A DNA stretch of 64,000 bases from the NCBI GenBank assembly GCA_003427395.1, contig BFEA01000003.1:2340909-2404908 (forward strand), in the 5' to 3' direction. Shown in pieces: positions 46,041 to 47,133 of this stretch (position 1 is the first letter of the stretch; each line of letters opens with the position of its first letter). The stretch comes from Chara braunii (taxonomy: Eukaryota; Plantae; Charophyceae). A program made the translations under genes and the position numbers. The notes under the pieces were generated by a model. That model was not told the origin of the DNA. It saw only the letters and a program-made list of their open reading frames with translations, and ran no database searches.

Positions 46041-46487
46041 ATCGGACTATTCAATAAATCGGATTATTGATGGAATCAATAAATAAATCAAGCAGTGACT
46101 CATTCGATCTTTGAATACCGTATATGTTGTCATGAATGGAAGCCCTTGCAATTCGTATAAATAATTGTGCAAACAACATAAATACAACGACATAAAATCA
46201 AAGGTCCAATATCCGTATTGTAACACAAAAATTTTGTCTTGCGATGTGCAAAAGTGTTTGATCATGAAGTCCATTGCACAAAACACTACGAATAGCAATG
46301 TTCGGGGGAGGCTGGCGACCATTGATAAGAGTTTGCACAAAGTAAACGAATCAATGGAGGCAGTTGTCGCAATTGTGCGTGATGTCAATGGAGCACTTGC
46401 TCTACTGTGAAAGCCGAACATGGTCATATAGATTGATTTGCACTTTGTGGTTTCGAACACCTTTGCTTCCGTTTTTCGGTTTCCAGG

Positions 46488-46888
46488 AACATGCGAGAGC
46501 GTGCAGGCCAAACTACAAAGGTATCATTATTTACAATCACGAGTTTTGTGATGGCTTACGAGGCAACGACAACAATGGATCGAAAGACAAAAAAACTGAG
46601 CCACAAAGTCATATTGATAAGTGTAAAGTACGAAACATCTCAAAATACGAAAAAGCTTCAGAACCCAAAAACATTTGGACATGCAGGAAGAAAAAGGACA
46701 GAGAGTTGTTGAAGGGCCATGAATGTTACGAGTGCAAACGTTTCCATGACGTGTTGGGTATGCACGGAAAAAACCGATATGATATTGTTCAAGAATGTTC
46801 ACGACACAAGGACAACCAACGTAGACCGTTAACACCGCCTGTTTTTTGGAATATAGGCTTCCGTGATTCGGGACAATCAGATGAATGA
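46488..46888 (+). CDS. CtIP/Sae2/COM1 C-terminal domain-encoding exon or gene fragment
   Basis: RKKKDRELLKGHECYECKRFHD...CSRHK...PLTPPVFWNIGF matches the CtIP/plant COM1 C-terminus (CxxC, RHR-like, TP, FWxIGF); candidate acceptor TTTCCAG ends at 46487. Confidence 0.8.
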
Positions 46889-46972
46889 GACAGTGTGTGT
46901 AGTTACATACAGGACACCATAGGTAAACATGTGACGTTTCAAAAAGGAATGGAAGAAACACGTGTGTGTATA

Positions 46973-47003
<31 letters not shown>

Positions 47004-47075
47004 CGTCACAAATAGAATTGCCCGGTAAAACCGTAGGCAGAGAGAGAGAAGAGTACAACAAACGAGGGGCTGTGA

Positions 47076-47133
47076 CAAACTGTTTCGTCGGAGTTTCACC
47101 GACTCATCAGGAGGATGAACCCTCAACAGTCTG
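47076..47133 (-). ncRNA. Type III hammerhead ribozyme
   Basis: Minus strand reads CAGACUGU-U-GAGGG UUCA UCCUC-CUGAUGA-GUCGG UGAAACU CCGAC-GAA-ACAGUUUG. All three stems pair and the core is intact. Confidence 0.9.

Follow-up and report, generated by a model that had tools for sequence, protein, structure and literature searches.

Why a C-terminal domain of the Sae2/CtIP family should lie among satellite repeats in the genome of the alga Chara braunii, with a hammerhead ribozyme close by on the opposite strand, is the question that this locus raises. An earlier note on this DNA had offered two answers: that the segment is the final exon of host COM1, whose introns would be filled with satellite DNA, or that a ribozyme-bearing mobile element has captured a mini-CtIP. 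We analyzed the whole 64-kb stretch of DNA, here called the window. Judged by its sequence, the segment most likely represents a 3'-terminal exon, belonging either to the COM1/GR1-type gene of the alga or to a duplicate of that gene, perhaps a recent one. We consider it highly probable that the segment is both host-derived and unrelated to the ribozyme, and we give about an even chance to its belonging to a working host gene. The following features, numbered from the first letter of the window, enter the argument.

39640-46050 (approximate), no strand assigned: AATC-type tetranucleotide satellite, a possible intron or intergenic filler (repeat families D1-D4; NQSI-type ORF translations)
46165-46410, plus strand: upstream ORF of 81 aa read from TTG, first ATG at 46264, with one sub-threshold Pfam match only
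46264-46341, plus strand: hypothetical first exon, followed by GTAAAC and in frame with 46487
46460-46486, plus strand: pyrimidine tract ending in AG (cctttgcttccgtttttcggtttccag), a likely splice acceptor read from the sequence
46487-46888, plus strand: putative 3'-terminal exon for a Sae2/CtIP (COM1/GR1) C-terminal domain, 133 codons and a stop
46631-46864, plus strand: conserved domain proper, RKKKDRELLKG-HECYEC...ECSRHK...LTPPVFWNIGF
46962-47003, no strand assigned: (GT)4(TA)n microsatellite between the CtIP island and the hammerhead repeat, seen in the sequence and as a place where reads are cut
47004-47133, minus strand: one copy of a dispersed, abundantly expressed repeat of ~130 nt, with RNA depth in the thousands over 47012-47122
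47077-47132, minus strand: type III hammerhead motif at the 5' end of the repeat unit (Rfam Hammerhead_3, RF00008)

The putative exon lies within a plus-strand ORF at 46364-46888, whose frame is open for 174 codons. Because the minus strand also has long ORFs in this region (154 and 243 aa), ORF length alone was not counted as evidence. The AG of the likely acceptor, at 46485-46486, is in phase 0 with the exon, which ends in ...GHECYECKRFHDVLG...QECSRHKDNQRRPLTPPVFWNIGFRDSGQSDE*. Its last 75 residues read RKKKDRELLKG-HECYEC-KRFHDVLG...QECSRHK...LTPPVFWNIGF, and the domain includes a CxxC motif, a C-x2-H motif, a CDK-type TP site and the FW..GF signature. The earlier note had reported an open 133-codon segment carrying the CtIP/COM1 signature (CxxC, RHK, TP and FWNIGF), and this segment is present at 46487-46888.

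Membership in the family was supported by several searches. The Pfam profile for the SAE2/CtIP C-terminus (PF08573), which the earlier note had named as a check, matched residues 139-167 of the stop-to-stop segment with 28.8 bits (E = 2.8e-6) against a gathering score of 19.8. This score is comparable to those of Camelina GR1 (28.1), a Protostelium protein (28.4) and a diatom protein (31.3). Using phmmer against 1.84 billion representative proteins, we obtained 421 matches with E ≤ 1e-3 (lowest 1.4e-12), each of which aligns through the Sae2/CtIP domain at its own C-terminus. The nearest ESM Atlas clusters are likewise SAE2 clusters, and a profile of land-plant GR1 matched residues 96-172 of the stop-to-stop segment with an E-value of 2.5e-12. 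When the 133-aa segment was used in a word-based protein search confined to candidates of 73-233 aa, nothing was returned, and no match was found to a solved structure. No near-identical protein was present in a collection of 15 billion proteins; the exon is therefore in no public gene model.

To judge the integrity of the domain, we used an alignment of 174 domain sequences. All 13 columns conserved in at least 90% of the sequences are kept in the query. Among the 18 columns conserved in at least 80%, the query differs at three (V>C, R>K and P>R), and 21% of family members differ at as many or more. Scored with a family HMM built without it, the query reached 88.5 bits against a median of 101, the 16th lowest of the 174, the other sequences having been in the training set. 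The RHK in place of RHR that had been singled out at the start is indeed there, but it is not an oddity, as SRHK is a natural variant carried by 30 of the 174 members. The domain thus appears intact by the family's own standards and within its normal range, and the segment reads as a real, intact coding exon for a Sae2/CtIP C-terminal domain.

We further examined the lineage of the segment. The FWNIGF motif occurs in all 38 land-plant GR1 sequences and, among the 136 remaining sequences, in the query only. An AU test did not reject a single clade of the query and plant GR1 (p-AU 0.72). The tree constrained in this way had a likelihood 21 lnL units above that of the free tree, because the short free search had missed it; in the free tree, the query falls outside a plant GR1 clade that has 100% SH-aLRT support. 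The trees are based on an alignment of only 77 columns, and the query has a long branch (0.79, the median being 0.19). The top-scoring relatives are proteins of a diatom and of Amoebozoa, with 52-55% identity. The land-plant block CEHH..VSRHR[YF][RK], which lies between CxxC and TP, is absent from the query, which has QECSRHKDNQRRP. These relatives outrank plants because the central part of the domain was remodelled in land plants (CEHH..VSRHRYRY), whereas the general ECSRH[RK] has been retained in the query.

Cluster names obtained for 20 of the matches covered a diatom, Amoebozoa, plants and one insect, with no charophyte among those 20, and the best 120 listed matches in a search from a conifer GR1 C-terminus were all from land plants. 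Searches of viral and metagenome contigs found no relatives of the segment and no sign of a viral or foreign origin. Because FWNIGF is restricted to plants and the AU test does not reject grouping with them, the segment is probably of host, that is, streptophyte algal, descent. The lineage data are compatible with vertical descent, short of proof. The form of the domain appears intermediate, combining the general eukaryotic ECSRH[RK] with the land-plant FWNIGF end, and would help to date the plant-specific remodelling.

A plant-type TBL gene at 30783-33921 on the minus strand, which consists of two ORFs with PMR5N and PC-esterase domains, is the closest clear host gene, at a distance of 12.5 kb from the exon. 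Its best matches are land-plant TBL proteins, with an identity of just 31-40%. The DNA of the window is that of a streptophyte distant from land plants. At 27985-28085 on the plus strand lies a complete gene for U6 spliceosomal RNA (Rfam 81.6 bits, E = 3.6e-19).

If the segment is a terminal exon, the remainder of the gene should lie upstream. A profile built from 114 land-plant GR1 proteins of full length, searched against the 64 kb, matched only 46346-46885, corresponding to profile positions 549-634 of 639. Searching the window by tblastn with 160 homologues revealed neither a second copy nor an N-terminal exon, so that the copy-number check proposed in the earlier note gives a single copy within the window. 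An exon for the N-terminal coiled-coil oligomerisation region was thus detected by neither the GR1 profile nor tblastn; its absence is weak evidence, because the N-termini of the family are poorly conserved. Pfam searches of 20 neighbouring ORFs identified a TBL esterase, a LINE-type reverse transcriptase and a zinc knuckle, with no parts of COM1. The LINE-type retroelement has a 969-aa ORF at 4986-7895 on the minus strand, with an RVT_1 match of 111 bits and a weak zf-RVT match.

Directly upstream of the exon lie ~430 bp of unique sequence and then ~6 kb of the AATC-type satellite, followed by microsatellites and assembly gaps. The gaps, runs of N at ~35100 and ~36090-36330 in microsatellite-rich DNA, limit the search for upstream exons there. 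The CtIP/hammerhead block as a whole is flanked by the AATC satellite (to ~46050) and by (TA)n/(GA)n microsatellites. The short upstream ORF described before exists at 46165-46410, with 81 aa when read from TTG. A possible kinship between this ORF and another small ORF at 47265-47489 was considered and rejected, as the two are unrelated to each other.

Expression was assessed with three oligo-dT paired RNA-seq runs under the same species label, from which 8.9, 16.7 and 16.2 million reads were sampled (~42 million in total, 6-13% of each run; tissue unspecified). RNA depth was zero in every bin of 46050-46974, and also over the upstream ORF. In the same three runs the adjoining hammerhead repeat was covered thousands of times; the runs therefore do contain RNA of this organism. 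The splice junctions into the exon start (~46487) that the earlier note had looked to did not appear, and the acceptor at 46485-46486 was joined by no read in these three poly(A) runs. Words of the segment were almost wholly missing from fourteen further runs under this species label. Roughly estimated, expression of the exon is below ~0.1 TPM in those samples. Genes of the COM1 type often show weak or conditional expression.

Taken together, the data are best fitted by the first reading, a terminal exon of host COM1 whose introns are filled with satellite, because a strong acceptor, an intact domain, the plant-only FWNIGF and a compatible tree test all agree with it. It falls short of proof, as neither a transcript nor an exon upstream was detected. 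The upstream exons would be too divergent to recognise, or would lie beyond the satellite-filled flank. Several observations tell against a gene that is still working: the zero depth over 46050-46974 in the three oligo-dT runs, the lack of an N-terminal COM1/GR1 exon in the 64 kb, the lack of a near-identical protein among 15 billion, the missing land-plant CEHH..VSRHRYRY block and the long branch of 0.79 against a median of 0.19.

Part of this evidence would also fit a non-functional relic, namely a duplicated terminal exon or a truncated COM1/GR1 copy that became stranded between satellites, with the working gene elsewhere. The zero RNA depth, the lack of upstream exons in 46 kb, the ~6 kb satellite that begins 430 bp upstream, the long terminal branch and the three substitutions at columns conserved in at least 80% of sequences are all consistent with such a copy. 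Its death, however, would have to be too recent for stops to have arisen or conserved residues to have been lost. There is no decay beyond family norms, since 21% of true members have equal mismatches and all 13 near-invariant columns are kept, and the frame is open for 174 codons. Moreover, the silence in RNA means less for a weak or conditional gene of the COM1 type in runs of unspecified tissue. A relic has, in our view, a fair probability, although a lower one than a working gene.

If expressed, the protein would act like other CtIP proteins (COM1/GR1 in plants) as a cofactor of the MRE11 complex. By analogy with the family, its TP site would be phosphorylated by CDK, and the CxxC...CSRH[RK]...FW.IGF module would promote the endonucleolytic clipping of blocked DNA ends by MRE11 and so the start of resection. 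The segment is of interest as a candidate charophyte locus of the resection cofactor CtIP/COM1.

Another possibility is that the segment represents a small family of compact CtIP genes of ~160-190 aa that consist of the C-terminal domain only and are possibly dispersed with repeats. A gene of this kind, whose exons we examined one at a time, can be drawn on paper, from a TATA-like TATAAATA at 46156-46163 through an ATG at 46264, a hypothetical exon to 46341, a 145-nt intron at 46342-46486 (GTAAAC...TTTCCAG) and the exon at 46487-46888, with the stop at 46888. The in-frame intron and the upstream ATG and TATA are what speaks for it. However, none of its exons has RNA support, AT-rich DNA abounds in TATA-like and GT/AG strings, and the window holds one copy only. 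To our knowledge, every characterised CtIP, Sae2 or Ctp1 protein requires an N-terminal oligomerisation domain, which such a protein would lack. We therefore consider a compact family improbable. If it were true, its members would be shorter than any known protein of the CtIP family. They would retain only the C-terminal MRE11-activating domain and, without an oligomerisation domain, could modulate or compete with the canonical resection cofactor. Unless this multi-copy reading holds, the locus is, beyond its interest for the lineage, an ordinary segment of a host gene.

Finally, we analyzed the hammerhead and its relation to the exon. The antisense hammerhead motif that had been placed ~190 bp past the stop is real; it lies on the minus strand at 47077-47132, 188 nt past the stop of the exon. 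Its Rfam score of 47.4 bits (E = 1.7e-9) is just under the gathering score of 48.5, and its core, CUGAUGAG...CGAAAC, is intact, a pattern unique in the window. It folds into the expected three-way junction with helices I and II closed (-22 kcal/mol, z -2.3). The type III hammerhead at 47077-47132 is thus a real motif and a predicted ribozyme. Three decayed hammerhead copies, at 37793-37852, 42373-42428 and 45279-45328, have the same orientation as the intact one, and two of them sit inside the AATC satellite.

Among the reads assigned to the repeat, 90% are only 95-99% alike, and two private letters of the local copy, 47054 and 47115, hardly occur in the RNA. Many reads depart from the unit at 47096, 47107, 47114 and 47120, and these loose ends suggest variable 5' truncation, in the sense of the ribozyme, in other copies. 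On the 47004 side the unit is bounded by TA repeats, in other copies as well. First mates map to the plus strand at ~6:1, which under the usual stranded protocol indicates minus-strand RNA, the sense of the ribozyme. Reads of the repeat at 47004-47133 also contain many joints that run backwards, from 47071-47114 to 47028, with TA repeats and the start of the unit between the two sides. Such joints are compatible with circular RNAs, or with copies that lie in tandem or next to each other with (TA)n in between.

Hammerhead-carrying Penelope-like elements of the Chlamys type have been reported in Chara braunii (PMC8557442). In a comparison within the window, no match was found between the hammerhead repeat and the Penelope-like element at 49857-56800. 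The behaviour of the hammerhead repeat is that of a small, retroelement-like unit with microsatellites as insertion sites, in line with that report (PMC8557442), and the local copy would represent an independent insertion of this abundant repeat into a (TA)n tract.

The idea that the repeat carries the CtIP module as cargo, moving or expressed with it, draws on proximity only, a ribozyme 188 nt from the stop and on the opposite strand. Copies of the hammerhead in the window are alike over the ~56-nt ribozyme and nothing more. The expressed unit of ~130 nt ends at (TA)n near 47004, and thousands of reads of the family in the three runs include none that reaches into the CtIP island or maps to it. 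The island is not framed by terminal repeats, inverted or direct, the hallmarks of retrozymes or gene capture (LTRs, TIRs or paired ribozymes around an ORF) are absent at the locus, and neither viral nor metagenomic relatives of the segment were found. On these grounds we dismiss the capture of a mini-CtIP by a ribozyme-bearing element, the second of the two original readings, as very improbable. A literature search for a Chara COM1 or a transposon-borne CtIP yielded nothing relevant. The position of the hammerhead beside the exon is a coincidence of independent insertion, and the ribozyme has no functional link to the exon. The tempting connection between the two is thereby removed, as the adjoining hammerhead is a separate, abundant repeat.

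Each part of the locus can be compared with known systems. The repeat resembles hammerhead-bearing retroelements, such as plant retrozymes and the Chlamys elements, in its type III hammerhead, its insertion at microsatellites, its variable 5' truncation and its abundant RNA from one strand. It differs from them in that the local unit is just ~130 nt long, without an LTR pair or an ORF, and leaves out the CtIP exon.

For the exon, the closest matches by identity are short CtIP orthologues of protists and fungi. This group includes S. pombe Ctp1, S. cerevisiae Sae2, the RBBP8-like proteins of Protostelium and Planoprotostelium and the diatom homologue P0001. It provides the best matches, at 52-55% identity over ~65-75 residues, and contains the SRHK/SKHK variant. 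Its members, however, are proteins of 224-1111 aa with N-terminal regions, whereas only the terminal 133 codons of the query are identifiable.

Land-plant COM1/GR1 differs from the query in several respects. Identity over the domain is only ~35%, the query has the general eukaryotic ECSRH[RK] in place of the CEHH..VSRHRYRY block, the N-terminal part of 450-750 aa found in land plants was not detected in the window, and the query locus has no reads in the three poly(A) runs. The likenesses lie at the C-terminal end of the protein. In both, the Sae2/CtIP domain stops a few residues after FWNIGF, and the motif RKK.ERE.L.G..C..CK.F and a TP site ahead of FW are common to them. FWNIGF itself is exclusive to the land-plant clade and the query, and the tree test allows a sister position of the two.
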